IMG/VR virus record: IMGVR_UViG_3300023174_000033
Location: 248,001-312,000 of that record
DNA length: 64,000 nt
Reading direction: 5' to 3' (one strand)
The notes beneath the pieces are model-generated. The model ran no database searches and was not told the origin of the DNA. It saw only the letters and a list, made by a program, of their open reading frames with translations. Shown here one piece after another: positions 2,974 through 60,138 of the stretch; within the stretch, counting starts at the first letter, position 1; each line of letters opens with the position of its first letter. Both the position numbers and the translations under genes were made by a program.

Positions 2974-4674
2974 TTAAAATTCAAATTCAGAAGATTCTTC
3001 TCCACCAGCTTCTGGTGATGCCTGAGCACCACCTGCTTGAGCCTCTGGAGCTTCTTGTGCACCACCTTCTGGCGCGGCTTGGGCACCACCCTCCATTCCA
3101 CCTTCACCACCCTCCATTCCACCTTCACCACCTGATGCGGCCCCACCTCCTTGTGCAGATTTGATCCAATAGGATTTGTTTTCTTCTTTTTCTTCGGCAG
3201 TGAGTTTCATTATTTTATCAACTAAATAATCTATGTGAAAATATGGCTGACCATCTGCAGTTTGAATTCCCAACAAGGTGCTCAATAACCCTGCTCTCTT
3301 TTCCATATTTCCAAGTTTTTTCCATTCCTCAAATAATTGATTTGAGACAAAATTGATGTCAACCTGATTCAAGAAAATTTCATCATCTTTCAATTCTGGG
3401 AACTCCATACACATCTGCAGTTTTAAAGGTTTAACAATTAACTCTTTGTAATTCGCTCTTAATCTATTAATAAAATTATTAAATTTAACTTCATCTCTGG
3501 TCATAGAAGCTGCGTCATCAAAGACCGTCCCACCACCATTCTCCTTGTCAAATCTTTGGAAAGGTATTTTAGAAGCTCGCTTTAATGCGTTATAGAACCA
3601 AGTCAACATATCATTTTCGTTCAAATTATGACCTTCTGGACTTACTAATTCCATGGCTGGGGTTCCAGCGTCTCCCTCTGGGAACCAAATTTGTTTATTG
3701 TAAGGCAAGTGTTTTTTCCCATTGATTGTAACCGTTCCTAGTGTATCATCCCATTCAATTTCTTCAGAGTAATCGGCAATCAATTGTCCAATCTGTTCCT
3801 CCGCTCTTTGTCTAGGTAATCCTTTGATTGGTATGGTGAATTTCTGATAAATTGTAGCATTAATAATATTGAACATTATACGTGTCTGCTCAAGTATTTT
3901 CAATTGATTATATGGTTTGATTAATCCTTCAACATATGAAGTTTCAGTGTAGTCATTTTGAGTTGAGTAAGAAATAAATACAATTTGAGAGTCCAAAAAT
4001 ATCCTCCTCAATTGCGGATCCTCTGGGAATTGTATCCATAAATTTCCAATAGCAGGTTCATACGCTGGTACCAATGTTTCGGGACGAAGTCTATTGAAAT
4101 AAATGATATTCTTTTTCTTATCGTCCCAAACAATTTCCATAGCAACATAACCATCAATTAAGAAGTCTCTCATCATGTTCCAAGCGGTTATGTTATCACC
4201 AAATCCAAACTTGTGATAAATTACCTCAAAGTATTCTTGGTACTTATCTCTCACATCTTGAGAGAAATCATTTGATAGGGGATCCGGTGCGCAGAAATCC
4301 TTTTCATCATTAAATATAATAGCTTCGTCAGCTACCGCTGATAGGAAATCCCTAATTTCATCTTTTATAGAATATTCTCTCAATATTCTTCTTTTATCCG
4401 CATAAGCTCTATCTAAATACGGAATTGATTTTTTATTTAACACAGAAGCTACCGCTTTCTGTGAGAAAAAATCATACATTGAATTATTCTTTTGGGAAAA
4501 TGGGTCTTCATTAATACCAACACCCACAGTATTTCTCAAAATCATATCATCATATTTCATTCCGAAATTGGATAGATTTCTGAGTAATCTATTGAATAAT
4601 CCCTTATTTTCAACAGATGAATTCAAATTCATTTGATTTTGATTTTGTTGATTGAGGGGGTTATATGAAGCCAT
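2974..4674 (-). CDS. Portal protein (T4 gp20-like)
   Basis: FLIDG, LIKPYNQLKILEQ, KGLPRQRAEE, TRDEVKFNNFINRLR motifs; Gly/Glu/Ala-rich C-terminal tail. Confidence 0.9.
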   Translation of the reverse strand: MASYNPLNQQNQNQMNLNSSVENKGLFNRLLRNLSNFGMKYDDMILRNTVGVGINEDPFSQKNNSMYDFFSQKAVASVLNKKSIPYLDRAYADKRRILREYSIKDEIRDFLSAVADEAIIFNDEKDFCAPDPLSNDFSQDVRDKYQEYFEVIYHKFGFGDNITAWNMMRDFLIDGYVAMEIVWDDKKKNIIYFNRLRPETLVPAYEPAIGNLWIQFPEDPQLRRIFLDSQIVFISYSTQNDYTETSYVEGLIKPYNQLKILEQTRIMFNIINATIYQKFTIPIKGLPRQRAEEQIGQLIADYSEEIEWDDTLGTVTINGKKHLPYNKQIWFPEGDAGTPAMELVSPEGHNLNENDMLTWFYNALKRASKIPFQRFDKENGGGTVFDDAASMTRDEVKFNNFINRLRANYKELIVKPLKLQMCMEFPELKDDEIFLNQVDINFVSNQLFEEWKKLGNMEKRAGLLSTLLGIQTADGQPYFHIDYLVDKIMKLTAEEKEENKSYWIKSAQGGGAASGGEGGMEGGEGGMEGGAQAAPEGGAQEAPEAQAGGAQASPEAGGEESSEFEF

Positions 4675-48750: not shown

Positions 48751-51700
48751 ATGAAAATAGATAAACCCTCCATTAATAGAATTACAGACTTACGTAGTAT
48801 CAACGACGTAAATATTACAATTGGTAATACAAGCTCACTCTCATTTCCAACATCAGAAGCAAATCACATCATAATTGGCGCATCGGCTGGTCAAGAAAAC
48901 TACGGTATAAATGTAGTTGGCTTGGGATTGGAAAGTGTGAAAAATAATGATGGTTCCTCGGTATATGCAATTGGTCGCAAATCTGCTTTTGGTAACTCAC
49001 AAGACCACGTAGTAGCTATCGGTGACCTCACTGCGAATGAAAATCTTGGAATAAATGTAAATGCTATTGGTGAGTGGGCAGGAGCTTCAAATTCAGGTGA
49101 TAATGTAAACGCTTTTGGAAAAAGGGCTGCTTATGGTAATACTGGTTCAAATGTAAATGCTTTTGGTGAATTGGCGGCACAGGGTAACGATGGTAATGAT
49201 TTGAATGCAATTGGTTACTATGCTGGCAATCAGAACACAGGCGATTATGTAAATGCGGTAGGTTGGATTGCTGGTAGGAAAAACACAGGTGATAATGTAG
49301 ATGCTTTTGGTAATTACGCAGCAGAGAGTAATAAAGGAAGTCGAGTAGTGGGGATTGGTAATGCGGCAGCATACCAAAATACTGGTTCTACTATTGTTGC
49401 AGTTGGTTACTTATCGGCATTTGGAAATACTGGATCAGACGGTGTTTATATTGGTAACAATGCTGGTTCGAAGAATATAGGTGACGGGGTAAATGCTATA
49501 GGTAATAGCTCGGGACTAGCAAATAGTGGAAATCAATTAAATTCAATTGGAAATGATTCAGCAAGAAATAACACCGGAAATAATGTTGTTGCCATTGGGG
49601 ACAGAGCTGCTTATCAAAACGAGGGTTCGGAAACATATGTTTTTGGTTTAGATGCTGGTAGAGAAAATAAAGGAAATTATGTTGCATCTATTGGAACGGA
49701 AGCTGCTAGAGAAAACACTGGATCCAATGTACAAGCTTTCGGAAGACTCGCTGCAAAAGGAAATACTGGTTCTGATGTGGTATCAATCGGTTATGCTGCT
49801 GGAATTAGGAATGTAGGGGATGTTATTAATGCAATCGGTCTTGAATCAGCTTTAGACAATAGTGGAAATTATGTAAACTCAATCGGTCAAAGAGCTGGGG
49901 ATACCAATACTGGTGATTTTGTAAACCAATTCGGAAGATATGCTGGTCAGAATAATAAAGGTTCCTATGCGAATCAAATAGGAGATTCAGCTGGTAAGTA
50001 TAATACAGGCATGAGTGTGAATCAAATCGGTCTAAATGCCGGTCTTGGTAACACTGGTTCATATGTGGTGCAGATTGGTGAAGGCGCTGGTTCAGGAAAT
50101 ACCACTAACCTTATGGTACAAATTGGTTTAGAAGTTGGTACAAATAATACTGGTGAGAGATCAAACCAAATTGGTGCTTTTGCTGGTGGAAATAATAGTG
50201 GATCATTTGCAAATCAAATTGGATTTGGATCGGGCGCAAATAACACAGGAGAACAAGCCACACAAATTGGAAATGCTGCAGGTTCGGGAAATTCCGGTCT
50301 TGCAGTTAATCAGATAGGCTCAAATGCGGGCCAATCAAACGAAGGTGATTATGTGAATCAAATAGGCGTTGGAACTGGTCAATCAAACAAAGGTAATAAT
50401 GCAAATCAGATTGGTAGTGGGGCTGGAAGTGGTAATGAGGGAAATGATGTGAATCAAATTGGAACAAATGCTGGTGGGAATAATACCGGAGATTCCGTTA
50501 ATTTTATAGGAAAAAATAGTGGTGCTAGTAATACTGGAACTTATGTAGAAGCGATTGGTGAAAACTCAGCTTTTTCAAACACTGGTGTCCATGTGATTGC
50601 TTTGGGATATGACGCAGCAAATGATAATTCGGGAAATAATGTCATAGCAATCGGAGGGACAGCGGCAAGAGAAAATACCGGTTCCGATGTAATTGGCATT
50701 GGTGAAAATGCTGCGTATTTAAATAGTGGTGCTTCAGATGTAATTGCAATCGGTCGTGATGCGGCTAAACAAAACACTGGTCAATATGTTTATGCGTTCG
50801 GAACTATTGCTGCTAGAGAAAATACAGGCACAAATGTCGTCGCTATAGGTGGTCCGGTACTCGTAAACAACTCCGGCAATCAAGTAGTTGGATTGGGAAT
50901 AAGTTCACTAGAAGATAATCAAGGCGACTATGTTATAGGCATAGGAGACATTACGGGAAATAGTAATACAGGTGATTATCTTATCGCTATAGGTAGAGAG
51001 GCTGGTACATTAAATACCGGAATTCATCAGAATGCTTTTGGAAATAGGTCACTATATAATGCCACTTCAAATTACTCAAATGCTATTGGGTATCAATCTG
51101 GCGAACAATCCTCTGGTAGTCATAAAAATATGATCGGATATGAAGCAGGATTGGGGTCTGGTGGCGATCGACAAGATGTAATGGGTTACAACGCCTTTTA
51201 TGAAGCAAGTGGTAGTGATATTGTTGCTATTGGAGCTTATGCATTATTCTTGGGCACTGCTAGTCGTTTAGTGGCAATTGGCGCGTCAGCAGGTATGTAT
51301 AATATCGCAAACGATGGTATCTTCATAGGTGGGGAAGCTGGTAGTTTCAACAAGGGAACTGAATCAATCCAAATAGGTAAACTTGCTGGTAGTAGAAATA
51401 CTGGAAGTAATGTAGTGCAAATAGGTATTGAGACAGGAACTGGTAATACTGGTTCTAATAATCTCCAAATAGGTGGATATGCTGGTCAAGAAAATATTTC
51501 AAGTGGATCAATACAAATAGGTTTATTTGCCGGATATCAAAATACTGGAAATCATTCCAATCAACTAGGTTATCAGGCGGGTTATCAAAATATTGGTTCA
51601 AGAGCAATACAATTAGGTTATGCCGCTGCTCAACAAAATAGTGGAGATTACGCTGTTCAAATCGGAGATAATGTTGGTGGCCTAAATACAGGTGATTATG

Positions 51701-54700
51701 TGAATCAATTCGGTGTGTCATCTGGTGCAAACAATCAAGGTAGTTATGTAAATCAGATAGGGTACGCAGTTGGAGATGGTAATAAGTCCTCATTTGTTAA
51801 TTCCATAGGTTATTTAACTGGTCAAGCAAATGGAGGTAGTTTTTCTAATTTTATGGGAGCTTGGGCGGGATGGCAAAATAGTGGGCACTCTGTCAACGCA
51901 ATCGGTAATAGTGCTTCAAAGTCAAACACCGGTGATTATGTAAATGCTATTGGAGATAATGCTGGGTTTTCCAATTTAGGAAACCATGTAAATTCTATGG
52001 GTCGAGATTCAGCGAGGGAAAACAAATCTGATTTTGTTGATGCAATCGGAACAGAGGCAGCAAAATTAAACTCAGGAACTTATGGTATTTTTATCGGATA
52101 TCAATCTGGATTATCAAATAAAGGTTCATATGTTGTGAGTTTAGGATATCAATCAGGTGATAATAATAGTGGTGAAGGTTCGGTAAGTATAGGTCGAAGA
52201 GCTGGTCAAAACTCTTCTGGTGATTATATGAATGCGATTGGATATCTAGCTGGTTTTGGTTCAAGTGGAGTCAGAAATAATTTCATAGGTTACGATACTG
52301 GTGAAAATAACACTGGCACAAGAGTAAATGCCATAGGTGAAAGTGCTGCCCTTTCCAATGATGGTAATTATATAAATGCTATTGGATTTGAAGCTGCTTG
52401 GGATAATGCCAGCGATTATGTAGATGCAATTGGGTATCAGGCGGCTTACCAAAACACAAACGCTTCAAATTATATAGTAGCAATTGGGCGTTCGAGTGGA
52501 TACAGAAATAGTGGATCATACAACAACTTCGTAGGAAATGAAAGTGGATTTGACAATGAGGGAAGTTTCAATATTGGTTTGGGGTTTCGATCTGGCTACT
52601 CTGTAACAGCATCATACGTCGTTTCCTTGGGATTTGAGAGCGGTCAAAATTCAATAGCTGGAGTAAATGTAAATATCGGAAGAGAAGCTGGTAAACAAAG
52701 TCTTGGCGCTGGTAGTAATTTTATCGGTGATATGGCTGGTAAAAATAATAAAAGTCAATACGTTATAGCGATAGGGGAATCAGCAGCAGAAGGAAATTAT
52801 GGAACTTTTGGCATTTTTCTTGGACGTTTCAGTGGTCAAAACAATCAAGGTGCGTCCAACATTGGATTGGGTAATAATACTTTCGTTAATAGTCTCGCCA
52901 CTCGTTCTGTTGGCATTGGTAGTGGTGGAGCTCTTCAGAATTCCTACGGTAGTTTCCTTGTCGCAATTGGAGATAGTAGTGGTGGATTCAATAAATCTGA
53001 TAGAACAATATCTATTGGTTACCTTGCTGGATATTTACAAGCTGGTACACAATCAATTGCTATAGGTAATGAAAGTGGACAAAGCAACATTGGTATTCGG
53101 GTTATATCAATAGGAAGTAGAGCTGCTTATGGAAATACTGGTAGTGAAGTTATATCTATAGGTTCAACTGCGGGTTACTATAATTCTGGTGAGAGAGGTA
53201 TCTATATAGGGATTGAATCCGGTAGAGAACATACTGGAGATAACTCAATCGCGATTGGTGATGGTTCATTGAGTAGAGAGACTATAGCTCCATTTAGAAC
53301 CACATCATCAACATACTCAATTGCCATAGGTTCAGATGCTGGTAAGAGAAGTAGTTTATCAAATAGTGTGGTGGTCGGTAAATCCGCTGGTCTTGGATCC
53401 TCTGGTGTTCAAATTATAGGCATTGGTGATTCAGCTCAATCAGGTTCAAGTGGTGCAAATAGTATAGGTATAGGTCAGTCATCACTTTCATCTAATTCAG
53501 GTACTTGGTCAATTGGATTGGGATATAGGGCAGGACAACTGAATACATCAGAATACTTGATTGCCATGGGATATGATGCTGGTAATCAAAATCAGGGAGA
53601 TAATTCAATTTTGCTTGGATATCAATCAGGTCTAGGTAATAAAAGTGATTCTACGATAAGTTTTGGGTTTCAATCGGGTTATCTAAACGAAGGAACTTAT
53701 TCCGTTATGGTTGGTGAAAGAGCTGGTGCGAATAATCAAGGATTTAGTTTAAACTCTGTTGGATGGTATGCAGGTAATGGTAATGATGGTGATTATGTTG
53801 TTGGTATAGGATATCAATCAGCAAGAGAGAATAAAGGAGATGATTTAGTTTCACTCGGACAAGAGGCAGGTCAGTTCAATAAATCATCAAATGTTGTATC
53901 TATTGGTCAGAGAAGTGGTCGTACAAATACCGGAACTTGGTCTAATTTTATAGGTTTCAAATCTGGAGAATTAAATACCGGAGCTTACACAAACGCATTT
54001 GGTTCTAGTGCTTCTTTCACAAATAAAGGTCAATATGTAAATGCGATTGGTTTTGAAGCTGGTGCATTCAATGAAGGGACATATGGTGATTTCCTCGGAT
54101 ATAGAGCTGGTTATCAAAACTTTGGAGAAAATTATGTTATTGGTATAGGTGTGCAAGCTGCTATGTCAAATTCAGCTTCAAACATAATTGCAATTGGTTT
54201 AAATGCTTTAAGAAGTAATTTAGGTGGAAGTGATGAAACCATCGGTATAGGTAATCAGTCAGGTAATCAAAATAAGGGGGTAAAAAATGTTTTCATAGGT
54301 AGTAACGCCGGACAATTACAAAAGGGTGACCAAAATATTGCAATTGGTGCTAACTCAGGACAACAAAGTTTTGGTACAAATTCAGTTTATATTGGTTTAT
54401 TTGCTGGATACCAACAAACCGGAGAAAGTGCTATTTTGATTGGTGAAAATGCTGGAAATGCTGGTACTGGACATGAAAATATAAGTATTGGTAAAAACGT
54501 TGGTGGAGTTAGAGGCTCAAATAATATTTCAATCGGGGAAGAAGCTGGTTCACAAATTAGAGCGACATTCAGTATACAAATTGGTTATAGAGCTGGAACA
54601 AGAAACTCTGGTTCGGATGTTGTAATTATTGGTAATAATGCAGGTGTAGGCAATACTGGCAGTAGTAATAATATAATAGGAGCGAGTGCAGGTCAAGGGA

Positions 54701-56130
54701 ATTTCGGTTCATTTGCAAATATAATGGGAGTTGATTCAGCTCTGAACTCTTTGAATATAAGTTATGGTAATGCTTTTGGATATGGTGCGGCAAGAAATGC
54801 TATAGGATTTGGTTCCAACTTTATTGGCCAAGAAGCTGGTTCTACTGCTGCTGCGGTTGCTCAATATAGTAATTATATCGGAGCATGGGCAGGTGGATCT
54901 AATGGTGGAGATAGAGTGAACTCGATAGGATTTTTTGCAGGCCATAACACCAAGGGATATTATTCTAATTATATCGGATGGGATGCTGGTAAAGATACAA
55001 ATATGCGTCACTCAAATGCTATAGGTTATAGGGCAGCAAGTGAAGTCGGTAAAAATCAAACCTCGAGCCCTAATCCTTTTAACAGTGCATTGAACCAATT
55101 TATAAATGCAATCGGAGTTGAATCTTTATTTGCAGGAACTGGAAGTCACGTTAACGCAATAGGTACTAGTGCTTCTTTCAGAGGAGCAGGGGAGTTTATC
55201 AATAGTATTGGTTTTGAAGCAGGCGCTATTACTAACGGTTCTTACAGTAACTACATAGGATTTAAAGCTGGATTTCAAAGTACAGGAGACTATAACGACT
55301 TTATTGGATATCAATCTGGATTTAGAAATAAAGGTAACAAAAACCTGGCAATTGGTACCGAGGCCTTATCGTCGTTCAACGGATTGTCGACAATAGGAAT
55401 CGGAGAGTTATCTGGTCAGTATTCCACTGGTAGTTCAAATATATTTATAGGAGGATTTCAGACCGGAAAATATTCGGAAGGAAATAGTAATATTTATATT
55501 GGGGGCAGAACGGGTGAAGATACAAATGGTGACGCAAATGTATCCTTAGGTATAAATAGTCTTCAGGGGGGTACTGCATCAACCACAATTGTGATTGGTG
55601 CTAATAGTGGGGGTAGTATGAGGACTTTGGATGGAATCGCTATAGGTAGTAATGCACTTTCAGGCCATAATGGGAATAATACTATCTCGATAGGTAAAAG
55701 TTCTGGTAATAATTCCTTAGCGAATAACCTGATTATGATTGGGGAGAACGCTGGTGAGCGTAGTAGAGGAACTCATAGTATACACATTGGTCAGAATTCT
55801 GGAGGTAAAAGTGGTGGGTTTCAGATTGGTCAGTACAATGTTGGTATAGGTAGGGAAAGTCTTTATGGACTCACCGGATCTTACTTAGTTGCTATTGGTG
55901 ATCAAGCTGGATACGAAAATTCCGCAGATCACGTTATTGCTTTGGGAGCAACTGCTGGATATAGAAACACAAAGAGTAACCAATTCATAATTAGTAATAG
56001 TAATATGCCAGTATACACCGATAAAGCTACAGCTGATGCCGCTATAACAGTAGCGAACGGATTCAACAGTGGTAATACTTACTTATATTGGAACACCGCA
56101 ACTGCTGATATAGGAGCTAAAAGATTGTAA
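48751..56130 (+). CDS. Long beta-solenoid fibre/adhesin-like protein (2459 aa, about 16-aa NxGxxVxAIGxxA repeats)
   Basis: Continuous Gly/Asn/Ser repeats similar to trimeric adhesin-head and fibre repeats; own late promoter at 48719-48726. Confidence 0.8.
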   Translation: MKIDKPSINRITDLRSINDVNITIGNTSSLSFPTSEANHIIIGASAGQENYGINVVGLGLESVKNNDGSSVYAIGRKSAFGNSQDHVVAIGDLTANENLGINVNAIGEWAGASNSGDNVNAFGKRAAYGNTGSNVNAFGELAAQGNDGNDLNAIGYYAGNQNTGDYVNAVGWIAGRKNTGDNVDAFGNYAAESNKGSRVVGIGNAAAYQNTGSTIVAVGYLSAFGNTGSDGVYIGNNAGSKNIGDGVNAIGNSSGLANSGNQLNSIGNDSARNNTGNNVVAIGDRAAYQNEGSETYVFGLDAGRENKGNYVASIGTEAARENTGSNVQAFGRLAAKGNTGSDVVSIGYAAGIRNVGDVINAIGLESALDNSGNYVNSIGQRAGDTNTGDFVNQFGRYAGQNNKGSYANQIGDSAGKYNTGMSVNQIGLNAGLGNTGSYVVQIGEGAGSGNTTNLMVQIGLEVGTNNTGERSNQIGAFAGGNNSGSFANQIGFGSGANNTGEQATQIGNAAGSGNSGLAVNQIGSNAGQSNEGDYVNQIGVGTGQSNKGNNANQIGSGAGSGNEGNDVNQIGTNAGGNNTGDSVNFIGKNSGASNTGTYVEAIGENSAFSNTGVHVIALGYDAANDNSGNNVIAIGGTAARENTGSDVIGIGENAAYLNSGASDVIAIGRDAAKQNTGQYVYAFGTIAARENTGTNVVAIGGPVLVNNSGNQVVGLGISSLEDNQGDYVIGIGDITGNSNTGDYLIAIGREAGTLNTGIHQNAFGNRSLYNATSNYSNAIGYQSGEQSSGSHKNMIGYEAGLGSGGDRQDVMGYNAFYEASGSDIVAIGAYALFLGTASRLVAIGASAGMYNIANDGIFIGGEAGSFNKGTESIQIGKLAGSRNTGSNVVQIGIETGTGNTGSNNLQIGGYAGQENISSGSIQIGLFAGYQNTGNHSNQLGYQAGYQNIGSRAIQLGYAAAQQNSGDYAVQIGDNVGGLNTGDYVNQFGVSSGANNQGSYVNQIGYAVGDGNKSSFVNSIGYLTGQANGGSFSNFMGAWAGWQNSGHSVNAIGNSASKSNTGDYVNAIGDNAGFSNLGNHVNSMGRDSARENKSDFVDAIGTEAAKLNSGTYGIFIGYQSGLSNKGSYVVSLGYQSGDNNSGEGSVSIGRRAGQNSSGDYMNAIGYLAGFGSSGVRNNFIGYDTGENNTGTRVNAIGESAALSNDGNYINAIGFEAAWDNASDYVDAIGYQAAYQNTNASNYIVAIGRSSGYRNSGSYNNFVGNESGFDNEGSFNIGLGFRSGYSVTASYVVSLGFESGQNSIAGVNVNIGREAGKQSLGAGSNFIGDMAGKNNKSQYVIAIGESAAEGNYGTFGIFLGRFSGQNNQGASNIGLGNNTFVNSLATRSVGIGSGGALQNSYGSFLVAIGDSSGGFNKSDRTISIGYLAGYLQAGTQSIAIGNESGQSNIGIRVISIGSRAAYGNTGSEVISIGSTAGYYNSGERGIYIGIESGREHTGDNSIAIGDGSLSRETIAPFRTTSSTYSIAIGSDAGKRSSLSNSVVVGKSAGLGSSGVQIIGIGDSAQSGSSGANSIGIGQSSLSSNSGTWSIGLGYRAGQLNTSEYLIAMGYDAGNQNQGDNSILLGYQSGLGNKSDSTISFGFQSGYLNEGTYSVMVGERAGANNQGFSLNSVGWYAGNGNDGDYVVGIGYQSARENKGDDLVSLGQEAGQFNKSSNVVSIGQRSGRTNTGTWSNFIGFKSGELNTGAYTNAFGSSASFTNKGQYVNAIGFEAGAFNEGTYGDFLGYRAGYQNFGENYVIGIGVQAAMSNSASNIIAIGLNALRSNLGGSDETIGIGNQSGNQNKGVKNVFIGSNAGQLQKGDQNIAIGANSGQQSFGTNSVYIGLFAGYQQTGESAILIGENAGNAGTGHENISIGKNVGGVRGSNNISIGEEAGSQIRATFSIQIGYRAGTRNSGSDVVIIGNNAGVGNTGSSNNIIGASAGQGNFGSFANIMGVDSALNSLNISYGNAFGYGAARNAIGFGSNFIGQEAGSTAAAVAQYSNYIGAWAGGSNGGDRVNSIGFFAGHNTKGYYSNYIGWDAGKDTNMRHSNAIGYRAASEVGKNQTSSPNPFNSALNQFINAIGVESLFAGTGSHVNAIGTSASFRGAGEFINSIGFEAGAITNGSYSNYIGFKAGFQSTGDYNDFIGYQSGFRNKGNKNLAIGTEALSSFNGLSTIGIGELSGQYSTGSSNIFIGGFQTGKYSEGNSNIYIGGRTGEDTNGDANVSLGINSLQGGTASTTIVIGANSGGSMRTLDGIAIGSNALSGHNGNNTISIGKSSGNNSLANNLIMIGENAGERSRGTHSIHIGQNSGGKSGGFQIGQYNVGIGRESLYGLTGSYLVAIGDQAGYENSADHVIALGATAGYRNTKSNQFIISNSNMPVYTDKATADAAITVANGFNSGNTYLYWNTATADIGAKRL

Positions 56131-58242: not shown

Positions 58243-58860
58243 ATGCCATTACCTCATTTTACCCAACTCCAGATGACCGGTTCGCCAGGTTTACCAGGTA
58301 GTTTACCAGAAGAACCAGTATACCTCAACTTGTTTGAGATTACTTTCGTTCTACCAACGATTCTACAAGCACAAGGCAGAGATCCTGTTTTGATGTTACA
58401 ACAAGCAAACTCTGTTGGATTGGATTTAACACCAGCAATCGAGACTGCTGAACAGAAATTCAAGTATTCAACCAGAGCATTCATGAAGACTCCTACAAAA
58501 ACTCACGTAGACTTCAATATCAAATTCAACGTGAACGTTACCGACCAAGGTCAAATGACCGTTTGGAACACATTAAAGGCTTGGTACGATGTTGTATGGA
58601 ATTCTCAGAATGGTACAGTTGGATATAAGAGTGATATCATCGGTTCTGTTATCGTTAATCAACACGATAAGAAGGGTGTTGTCCTAAGAAGAGTTACTTT
58701 CAACTCTGTTCAAATCAAACAAGTTTCAGCAGTTGAATTAGCTTGGAACTCAAATGAAATTTTAAGTGATGTTCAGGCTGATTTCGTAGCAGATTACTGG
58801 ATTGATGAGTACATTGATGGAAACTTCACTATTACTCCTCCACTTATTTCTGGATATTAA
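58243..58860 (+). CDS. Tail tube protein (T4 gp19-like)
   Basis: NLFEITF, LKAWYD, GYKSD, VNQHDKKGVVLRRVTF, ELAW, FVADYW. Confidence 0.8.
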   Translation: MPLPHFTQLQMTGSPGLPGSLPEEPVYLNLFEITFVLPTILQAQGRDPVLMLQQANSVGLDLTPAIETAEQKFKYSTRAFMKTPTKTHVDFNIKFNVNVTDQGQMTVWNTLKAWYDVVWNSQNGTVGYKSDIIGSVIVNQHDKKGVVLRRVTFNSVQIKQVSAVELAWNSNEILSDVQADFVADYWIDEYIDGNFTITPPLISGY

Positions 58861-58874
58861 TAGTATGTCACTAC

Positions 58875-58903
58875 AAAAAAACCCACCATTGGTGGGTTTT
58901 TTT
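58875..58903. terminator. Bidirectional intrinsic terminator
   Basis: aaaaaaacccacc-att-ggtgggttttttt between convergent genes. Confidence 0.85.
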
Positions 58904-59150
58904 ATTTGAATTTGTTTGCCATACCTGACATTTGGTTCATATAAGATCCAGGATTGAAGTTTGGCATTTTTTGCATTCCTTCTTCCTTTTTCTGACGTTT
59001 CTCCTCTTCTTCAGTTAATTCATTGACAATTCGGATGTTTTCCTCCATCATCCAATAAGGCCACTCATTCATAGCGGCCTCTTGAAGATGATAGTTCTTT
59101 TGTAATAGTAGTTTATTCTTTAATAAACTGCTCAAATGCGTCATGAACAA
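58902..59150 (-). CDS. gp51-like hub/tail assembly protein; possibly expressed as a frameshift extension of the upstream ORF
   Basis: LLLQKNYH...MNEWPYWMME...EEEEKRQ pattern; overlaps the gp26-like ORF in the +1 frame. Confidence 0.6.
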   Translation of the reverse strand: MFMTHLSSLLKNKLLLQKNYHLQEAAMNEWPYWMMEENIRIVNELTEEEEKRQKKEEGMQKMPNFNPGSYMNQMSGMANKFK

Positions 59151-60060
59151 CGAAAACAGCTGACGGTCCGTCGGGAAATATCATATCTGTGTGGATCTCT
59201 AGACCACACTGACATTGACTTTGCAGTTTCTCAATACCGAATGTAAGCTTCTCAACTGCAGAATTTAGGAATTGAAATGGAATATCCTCCATTTTTTGGA
59301 ATTCATCCAACTTTGATTTTATACCTTCAATAGTAATTGAATTACGGTCAGGTAACATGAAAGGAATAATTTTCAAGAAAGAAAGATTTGGTTTTCTTTT
59401 TTCAGCATTTTCCTTTACAATGTAATCAGTGAAAGACTTCTGAACACCAATAGTAGGTGGTGCCAAGTTGAACACTTGACCAGTTTTAATTTGGAATCTA
59501 AATGAAACTGAAGCAGGATCAAAAAATTCCATCACTCTTTCGGCTGGTTGGAAGAATTTGAAATTTTCCCTTTTCAGCTCAATCGCTACTTCGTTTCCAC
59601 AGGAACAATTAACCTTTGTAGTAAGTACAGAACCTTTTTGGAAAGTCAATTCTCTGATTAGGAAAATTAGATAATAACGATCAGGATCTCTCAAATCTAA
59701 ATATGAACCAATTGTGCCATCCAAGTGTTTAATTCTAACACAAGATGATAACATATCATTCATTTTCTCAACGATATCATAGAAGTTGTTATCATCAACC
59801 ATTGAATAAGCCTGAATTTCTTTTACTTGGGCTGCCCTAACTTGGATTGTTGAACCAGGAGGGTAAAGTAATCCACAAGGAAATTCCCTAACATCAAAAG
59901 CAAAATAATGCAAATCACTTGTTCTTGATTGTTCAATGTTATTTAGTGGTGTTTTTGGTGCTACTGGAGCTTCCATCGTTGGTTTATTTTGTTCAAGTCC
60001 TTCGAGGTGGCGTCTGAGATATTCTTCCTCACTCATGTTATTTTCTTGTTCTTTTGACAT
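59113..60060 (-). CDS. Baseplate hub assembly protein / tail assembly chaperone (T4 gp26-like)
   Basis: FPCGLLYP, VRAAQVKE, DRYYLIFLIRELTF, CSCG and CQCG Zn motifs, PPTIG. Confidence 0.7.
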   Translation of the reverse strand: MSKEQENNMSEEEYLRRHLEGLEQNKPTMEAPVAPKTPLNNIEQSRTSDLHYFAFDVREFPCGLLYPPGSTIQVRAAQVKEIQAYSMVDDNNFYDIVEKMNDMLSSCVRIKHLDGTIGSYLDLRDPDRYYLIFLIRELTFQKGSVLTTKVNCSCGNEVAIELKRENFKFFQPAERVMEFFDPASVSFRFQIKTGQVFNLAPPTIGVQKSFTDYIVKENAEKRKPNLSFLKIIPFMLPDRNSITIEGIKSKLDEFQKMEDIPFQFLNSAVEKLTFGIEKLQSQCQCGLEIHTDMIFPDGPSAVFVVHDAFEQFIKE

Positions 60061-60138
60061 AAAATAATAATTTTTTTTTCGTGTTATATATTATATAACC
60101 TAGGTTCCCAAAAAATTAAAAAAATTTGAACTTTTTTT

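Follow-up and report, generated by a model that had tools for sequence, protein, structure and literature searches.

Described two-product systems and the locus under study

The lambda G/GT type of frameshift, through which a tail assembly chaperone is made in two forms, was reportedly described by Xu, Hendrix and Duda in 2004. We here describe a locus in a window of 64,000 nucleotides (nt) (the whole stretch of DNA analysed, positions 248,001 to 312,000 of IMG/VR virus record IMGVR_UViG_3300023174_000033; positions below are those of the window) where, judging from the sequence and its relatives, a gene on the minus strand for a protein of 315 amino acids (aa) is very likely to yield a second product of 385 aa through a +1 slip at UUU-CCC. 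Very probably, phage tail assembly from two products of one gene is found here in a +1 version that was previously undescribed in the PF12322 family and in this phage group; no paper describing the frameshift was found in full-text literature searches, the Lak phages included.

Tail chaperone frameshifts of the lambda G/GT type have been reviewed, as has the probable +1 shift in the g-t genes of the haloarchaeal myovirus HSTV-2 (PMC5009743). The present locus resembles the lambda pair in that the two predicted forms share an N-terminal body, that the longer one would arise by a shift close to the gene's 3' end, that the gene lies in a tail module, and that the arrangement is conserved where the protein sequence is not. 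It differs in that the body has about 300 aa and is assigned to the PF12322 family, whereas the gpG-like chaperone has about 100-140 aa, and in that the phage is a contractile-tailed huge phage in which binding to tape measure or tube is putative. A first-pass annotation of this DNA, made from its letters and open reading frames (ORFs), had already drawn the analogy to lambda; the gene order of cultured relatives fits it, but the shift would be +1 here and is -1 in lambda, and no heptamer of the X_XXY_YYZ type is present at the junction. HSTV-2 is likewise contractile-tailed, and for its tail chaperone pair a +1 instead of a -1 shift is held probable, but its host is an archaeon, its proteins are unrelated and its site is uncharacterised.

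With regard to the shift site, UUU_Ynn is a documented +1-prone tetranucleotide in bacteria, influenza PA-X shifts at UCC_UUU_CGU, and Listeria phages shift at CCC sites, CCC there too making up about 5% of proline codons (PMC5009743). Hairpins that refold just 5' of the site stimulate +1 shifting on 70S ribosomes (PMC6321510; PMC3639245). The model proposed below follows the UUU_Y sites of Yersinia YopN-TyeA and influenza A PA-X, where tRNA-Phe in the P site moves from UUU to UUC next to a slow codon, and one relative of the locus, in Flavobacterium phage MaF61, shows UUU_CGA, similar to the PA-X site. It likewise recalls the CCC_N site of Listeria phage PSA cps/tsh, as CCC is rare (about 5% of proline codons) in the low-GC genome here. 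Compared with both kinds of site, UUU and CCC stand in tandem (U_UUC_CCR) and both tRNAs could re-pair; the locus is without a stop codon or 3' pseudoknot at the site, and either a 5' hairpin or a purine-rich motif is the candidate for a stimulator.

The closest relatives in terms of protein family are T4 gp26 and gp51. Membership in PF12322 is indicated by transitive hidden Markov model evidence and by the predicted fold, a CxCGxE motif is common to the window protein and gp26, and for T4 gene 26, too, the annotation gives a second product beside gp26, namely 26', which arises by internal initiation. The second T4 product differs, however, in arising by in-frame internal initiation, and gp26, with 208 aa, has no +1 extension. 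In the T4 sequence compared (locus L090, 3803-5229) gene 28 begins 56 nt inside gene 27.

The locus and its reading frames

The genome carrying the locus is that of a freshwater phage, a single contig of 464,605 base pairs (bp). Its GC content is 32%, and of its seven tRNA genes none is for Pro or Phe. Its nearest genome relatives are the 'huge phages' of 460-735 kb with accessions LR7565xx and LR745206, and DNA of the locus was found in lake and freshwater metagenomes. The ORF of the short form, which defines frame 0, runs on the minus strand (59113..60060) and is closed by TAA (59115-59113). Around the site it reads ...GAT ATG ATA TTT CCC GAC GGA..., with TTT as codon 295 (59178-59176), and the proposed shift site U_UUC_CCG (59172..59178, minus strand), which is UUU CCC G in frame 0, encodes Phe-Pro in both frames. 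The +1 frame is shut by TGA at 59183-59181 and is open from there to TAA at 58904-58902. The extension thus has 91 codons counted from TTC (58902..59177, minus strand), and the predicted fusion has 294 + 91 = 385 aa. The +1 translation begins Y-F-P-T-D-R-Q-L-F-S-L-F-M(59144)-T-H-L-S-S-L-L-K-N-K-L-L-L-Q-K..., in which the methionine is the first +1-frame ATG 3' of the site (59142..59144, minus strand); a TTG in the same frame and strand lies at 59148-59150. The last 20 frame-0 codons (296-315; 59116..59175, minus strand) are consequently part of two overlapping reading frames. The first-pass annotation had proposed a +1 shift here between two ORFs, and the positions it gave for TTT-C, the TGA, the stop at 58902, the 20-codon overlap and the possible starts at 59144 and 59150 are right in every case.

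Conservation of the junction in close relatives

A scan of IMG/VR gave 80 loci encoding the 315-aa protein at 55-77% identity. Together with three further loci (L001-L003) and the window they make up a close set of 84 loci with 57 distinct junctions and 62 unique coding sequences, across which protein identity is 44-78% (44% for L003 and 55-78% for the rest). TTT CCC is invariant at all levels, i.e., in 84/84 loci, in 57/57 distinct junctions and in the 62 unique coding sequences. The frame-0 stop is TAA at a constant position in all 84 loci, and in all 84 the +1 frame runs from TTC into the small ORF without a stop. The upstream limit of the +1 frame lies one codon 5' of TTC in many lineages and farther up in others, and never 3' of TTC; where a +1 TGA is found one codon before TTC this is because frame 0 reads ATG-A.. 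there.

CCC is the rarest proline codon, accounting for 5.3% in the window and 7.3% genome-wide, while AAC and GAC each make up about 21% of their codons in the window and GGA 33% of glycine codons. The genome holds nine in-frame TTT-CCC pairs, and a long +1 ORF (91 codons) is found only behind the one discussed here; the others are followed by 2-27 codons. Together with its recurrence in all 84 loci, this sets the arrangement above chance.

The junction is free of insertions and deletions in independent contigs from other metagenome samples. The locus is not an assembly artefact, as it agrees among over 80 assemblies made independently and among several isolates that were sequenced. Contigs of related phages from the same metagenomes align at 90% or more only across 59080-59217, which covers the site and the overlap, and since alignments of this quality are confined there this is the most nucleotide-conserved part of the gene.

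Onset of coding in the +1 frame

The position at which +1-frame coding begins was located in a codon alignment of the 62 unique coding sequences, with synonymous diversity taken as the codon diversity among sequences that have the consensus residue. The mean over codons 1-294 is 0.46, and it falls to 0.05 in codons 295-306 (Mann-Whitney against codons 1-294, p = 7e-8) and 0.10 in codons 307-315 (p = 3e-6). The boundary is sharp, as codon 294, directly before it, is hypervariable and varies at all three positions. Past it TTT, CCC, AAC/GAC, GGA, TCA, TTC, GTT, ATT and CAT are fixed or nearly so. Nucleotide diversity at frame-0 positions 1/2/3 is 0.22/0.15/0.48 in the single-coding part of the gene and 0.18/0.06/0.08 in codons 296-306; the variation that is left at position 1 places the variable sites at the third positions of the +1 frame. 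In agreement with this, the frame-0 changes D/N, G/S and I/V/L leave the +1 residues unaltered (CCR; CAG/CAA; CTA/CTG/CTC). The onset at codon 295/296 lies 11 codons upstream of the first +1-frame ATG (59144), and among the 57 distinct junctions no conserved alternative start codon was found between the site and that ATG.

Constraint in the +1 frame continues past the frame-0 stop through the 40 nt that appear intergenic. The 15 codons 5' of the ATG at 59072 have a +1 coding periodicity of 0.27/0.13/0.53 and invariant residues K, L, L, Q, K and E, while the residue at the ATG itself is Ile in 17 of the 62 unique sequences. The alignment of the whole extension has 21 invariant columns.

Selection acts on frame 0 as well. 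It ends in DAF[ED]x[FY]IKE, and in distant relatives the last residues are acidic-hydrophobic, e.g., ..DELL. Both forms probably matter, as in lambda G/GT, because the frame-0 stop position is fixed and the tail sequence is kept. The earlier proposal of a 315-aa protein and a form of about 385 aa, made through re-pairing from UUU to UUC at Phe295, draws strong support from this comparison, both from the invariance of TTT CCC and from the position at which dual coding sets in.

Distant relatives

A small +1 ORF overlapping the 3' end of the gene was seen in every relative reached, the LR7565xx huge phages included. The first-pass annotation had given two comparative observations that would count against the shift, homologs lacking TTT-C and homologs with stops between it and the internal ATG, and the proposal holds up on both. 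Besides the 57 invariant junctions, TTT-C is found in the relatives at 44% (L003) and 30% identity (L005), in Sphingomonas phage PAU, in Tenacibaculum phages pT24 and PTm1, in Flavobacterium phage MaF61 and in the Lak phages, and a stop between site and small-ORF body is found in none of the homologs. The site is TTT CCC in L003 and pT24, TTT CCC GAC GGA in PAU, TTT CAA in L005, PTm1 and the Lak phages, and TTT CGA in MaF61. In L005 the +1 frame opens one codon before TTC, as in the window. For the Lak loci, and for these only, TAG was read as Gln, as the homologous ORF has in-frame TAGs there.

The peptide read in the +1 frame is conserved in the distant relatives as FPTE..[IV]FSL[FI]Q. It is FPTDRQLFSLF in the window, FPTESNIFSLI in PAU and FPTESKLLSLI in pT24, and its conservation exceeds that of the protein body. 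It is conceivable, though we hold this somewhat short of an even chance, that the UUU_C cassette, usually UUU_CCC and placed behind a purine-rich or hairpin element, is ancient and has been conserved in gp26/gp51-family genes of giant and jumbo contractile-tailed phages, in the range covered here, i.e., Bacteroidota phages (Lak, LR7565xx, Tenacibaculum, Flavobacterium and Chryseobacterium) and Sphingomonas phage PAU. To the known recoding sites the locus very probably adds a natural +1 site that is well conserved, a UUU_CCC accompanied by a 5' element, from phages with mostly Bacteroidota hosts. In Bacteroidota frameshift signals have been little studied and the ribosomes make scant use of Shine-Dalgarno pairing.

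Proposed shift and its candidate stimulators

According to the model proposed here, most or some ribosomes would follow frame 0 to the TAA at 59115-59113 and give the 315-aa protein, while a fraction would slip +1 with UUU (codon 295) in the P site, where tRNA-Phe (anticodon GAA) could exchange its wobble pairing on UUU for Watson-Crick pairing on UUC. Slow decoding of the rare CCC in the A site probably favours the slip. Alternatively, or in addition, tRNA-Pro could slip from CCC to CCG. Shifted ribosomes would read 90 more codons to 58902, and the 385-aa product would share its first 296 residues with the short form and carry a new, helical C-terminus. The shift would have to lie within U_UUC_CCR, because upstream of it the +1 frame is closed or unconstrained and downstream of it P and T do not vary in the +1 frame, where frame 0 has either D or N. 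The slip itself, and the size of the fraction that takes it, we infer from these features.

A slip from UUU to UUC and one from CCC to CCR give the same protein, as Phe-Pro is encoded in both frames. That UUU_C is the sequence on which the slip would occur is suggested by those relatives in which UUU_CAA or UUU_CGA is found, whereas the relative L004 (below) points to CCC_A. As to slowness of the A-site codon, CCC is rare here and the phage has no tRNA-Pro gene, yet relatives have CAA or CGA at this place.

Upstream of the site there is a conserved 5' hairpin with the core GUGUG-[11 nt]-CACAC (59189..59209, minus strand), which at its 3' end is separated from UUU by 10 nt. The window has a longer stem (59180-59219), with a fold of -15.7 kcal/mol and z = -3.07. 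For the clade RNAalifold gives GUGYG-[GU GAG GAG GUC]-CRCAC with two covarying pairs, the first changing from TGT..CAC to TGC..CGC nine times and never to C-A, the second from ..G/AC. to ..C/AG. three times; 97.6% of cells are paired, and covariation is 0.265 against 0.137±0.019 in shuffled alignments, none of 500 reaching the observed value. Synonymous diversity is zero outside the overlap at just three codons of the gene, E287 and E288 (both GAG) and H290 (CAC), which lie 5-8 codons before the site and fall within this RNAalifold hairpin. By refolding behind the ribosome, the small hairpin probably helps the slip in the main clade. A role for the hairpin is proposed for the main clade only, as the upstream folds in distant relatives equal shuffled sequence: those picked out by eye in PAU, L005, MaF61, Lak, pT24 and PTm1 stay at shuffle level (z -0.6 to +0.9), which speaks against a stimulator of this kind throughout the group, and the notion of a universal 5' hairpin was dropped.

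The hairpin loop contains the invariant GAG of E288 (59199-59197), which is part of GGAGG in most relatives, and GAGG or GGAGG recurs at a distance of 17 nt 5' of UUU throughout the main clade and in L003, L005, PAU and Lak. As a Shine-Dalgarno element stimulating a +1 shift this motif was rejected, and to that extent the motif counts against the proposal rather than for it: in prfB +1 stimulation the Shine-Dalgarno spacing is about 3 nt, which 17 nt does not fit, and from work on dnaX and prfB long spacings favour -1. Another candidate, a 3' hairpin AACGGA/UUCGUU directly after CCC, was also rejected; none of its pairs covary, and it falls within the part that is coding in both frames.

Alternative explanations

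The one alternative of real weight is two overlapping genes without any shift, the second encoding a protein of 80-82 aa that starts at the ATG at 59144 or the TTG at 59150, within the last 10-12 codons of the first. Every main-clade sequence has a +1-frame ATG 11-12 codons past the site, on either of two neighbouring codons, hosts of the Bacteroidota type can initiate without need for a Shine-Dalgarno sequence, and plausible +1-frame starts farther upstream are found in PAU and L004. Moreover, in the GenBank entries of PAU (gp94), MaF61 (ORF156), pT24 (gp131), PTm1 (ORF-023) and MA9V-2 (MA9V2_060) the extension appears as a small hypothetical gene of its own, and in the other public records consulted it carries no annotation. 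The ATG at 59144 is, however, an automatic by-product of the frame-0 codons for His-Asp or Asp-Ala (CAT-G, GAT-G), and a start there leaves unexplained why constraint in the +1 phase begins at TTT, 11 codons upstream, and why TTT and the rare CCC are invariant. It also fits poorly with the distant loci, for the +1 peptide is kept in L003, where 49 codons pass before the first ATG, in L005, which has no ATG, GTG or TTG for 28 codons 3' of the site, and in the Lak phages, with about 45 codons until a Met. As a full account of the locus we therefore regard separate initiation as unlikely. The first-pass annotation had named a start at 59144 or 59150 as the alternative to its shift; as the sole mechanism such a start has the evidence against it, but the ATG is there in the main clade, and initiation from it may coexist with the shift. 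Two further explanations fare worse. If the genes did not overlap at all, the second would encode 56 aa from the ATG at 59070..59072 (minus strand), which in the window has the Shine-Dalgarno-like AAGAGG 5 nt before it, and the open +1 frame upstream would be due to chance. AAGAGG is not conserved and is read as Gln-Glu codons, and the small ORF does not begin at this ATG, as the 15 codons before it show the periodicity and invariant residues of a coding sequence and its Met is so often Ile; such an arrangement is highly improbable. Hardly any more credible is slippage of RNA polymerase that drops one base in T3C3 and is followed by standard translation. Known transcriptional slippage tracts have 6-9 or more bases (reviewed in PMC5009743). 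The runs here are much shorter, and they are shorter still in the relatives with TTT CAA or TTT CGA.

A number of observations weigh against the proposed shift at UUU-CCC, or against its being the only route to the extension. The presence of a +1 ATG in every main-clade sequence means that independent initiation may also occur. In L004 (LR756504, 2183-2240) the homologous sequence is TAC CCC ATC, without TTT, and a +1-frame ATG (2192) lies behind a run of A, 11 codons upstream of CCC; either a separate start may have replaced the shift here or the shift may take place on CCC_A. MA9V-2 has no TTT at the homologous codon, and ATT TTT CTA follows eight codons later. In PAU (L086, about 3360-3400) a perfect GGGAGG stands 6 nt ahead of an ATG that is in the +1 frame and precedes TTC by four codons, and as the PAU host uses Shine-Dalgarno pairing the extension might start independently there too. 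Because of the starts in PAU and L004, some lineages may make the extension separately, in addition to the shift or instead of it. In-frame TTT-CCC is moreover not avoided genome-wide, with nine pairs seen and 9.6 expected, and it follows that the tetranucleotide alone is not strongly shift-prone. A search of sequencing runs for the stretch returned none that is on record as RNA. If the +1 slip at UUU-CCC does operate, public records split one two-product gene into two genes or leave its extension unannotated.

The protein family and its predicted fold

The first-pass annotation had called the two ORFs gp26-like and gp51-like. Assignment of the 315-aa protein to a T4 gp26/gp51 family, related to PF12322, as a tail or baseplate assembly protein is supported, and here the earlier call is upheld through relatives and through the fold. 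The window protein itself has no Pfam match above threshold, PF12322 included; its homolog PAU gp93 matches PF12322 (T4_baseplate) at 33.9 bits with a cut-off of 24.5, 4 of 32 close homologs give weak matches (best 1.3e-4), and in the nearest ESM-Atlas clusters 15-28% of members carry PF12322. T4 gp26 and gp51 (249 aa) are both in PF12322 (E 9e-64 and 4e-52, respectively) and are paralogs. The AF2 model of the window protein is of moderate confidence (pLDDT 70.7), with residues 294-315 disordered. Foldseek against BFVD matched it to the 'baseplate hub subunit' of SP-15 (1e-7), a 'T4-like hub assembly protein' (2e-5), Gp26 of Aeromonas phage 25 (4e-3) and PAU gp93, at TM values of about 0.35-0.55. 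A sequence-profile search of the PDB gave no meaningful match and Foldseek against the PDB none at E <= 0.001; a wide structure comparison reached Z <= 5.4 and was treated as a lead only. With hhalign the likeness to T4 gp26 is limited to a 14-residue stretch with CxCGxE, and nothing was found against T4 gp51 or gp28. The protein has two cysteine pairs, C152/C154 (invariant and near-invariant) and C283/C285 (invariant).

For the extension AF2 predicts four helices, and no match was found in Pfam, NCBIfam or PHROGs. The gp51-like label for the small ORF was rejected, as the alignment of the extension, compared with T4 gp51 by hhalign, reaches a probability of 0.07% and there are no family matches.

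Gene order and a possible role in tail assembly

In MA9V-2 the order of genes is sheath, tube, the homolog of the 315-aa gene, and a 1082-aa protein with a tape-measure PHROG match (1e-6). PAU and pT24 have sheath, tube and the homolog in the same order, and in cultured relatives a protein of about 1,100 aa follows the gene and its extension. In L001 the upstream gene is that of the tail sheath. In the window the gene adjoins a convergent tail-tube-like gene (58243..58860, plus strand, 205 aa; phrog_32623 9e-16, phrog_45 'tail tube' 6.5e-7), the PHROG of which also adjoins the homologous gene in PAU, pT24 and MA9V-2; family scans of the window identified no tape measure gene.

A role like that of lambda G/GT is suggested by the slot between tube and tape-measure-like genes, the place where tail assembly chaperones are encoded, together with the shared N-terminal body. 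The two forms most likely act as G and GT do, in assembly of the tail or hub, with the extension adding a second binding function. It is gene order from which this chaperone-like function is inferred, and the likeness to chaperone folds is weak, with 3klu YqbN at Z 4.2 and 2ob9, the HK97 chaperone, at Z 3.5, below the noise of the tool, and a range of Z 3.5-4.4 overall. The window protein has no match to Phage_TAC in Pfam or PHROG. Complex prediction for the extension and the adjacent tube protein gave a score of 0.00, which counts neither way. If the cassette is as old and as widely conserved as considered above, the gp26 family, long an enigma, would correspond in function to the G/GT chaperone of lambda, in these viruses and by extension in T4-like phages too. 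The locus would tie the family of T4 gp26 and gp51, for which a role in assembly of the hub was never settled, to the logic of two-product tail chaperones.

Neighbouring features

Between the extension ORF and the tail-tube gene lies a bidirectional intrinsic terminator (58875-58903) with a stem of 13 pairs flanked by runs of A and T. The terminator hairpin, AAAAAAACCCACCATTGGTGGGTTTTTTT (58875-58907), aligns with several unrelated, deeper lake-metagenome contigs, which suggests that the motif is reused elsewhere, in the phage group or in the hosts. At the other end, after a 78-nt gap and just 5' of the 315-aa gene, there is an AT-rich leader with TATATAATATATAA (60062-60125, minus strand). 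It resembles a T4-type late promoter (TATAAATA), and a scan for sigma-70 promoters gave no match in the leader. Farther away the window has several very long ORFs. Those of 3,083, 1,999, 1,404 and 1,380 aa lie near one of 2,459 aa, and the 1,999-aa ORF, the only one of these that was scanned, has no PHROG match. The 2,459-aa ORF (48751-56130, plus strand) consists nearly throughout of repeats rich in Gly and Asn, degenerate versions of xNxxGxxAxxxNTGxxVNAxG, and probably encodes a giant fibre-like structural protein.

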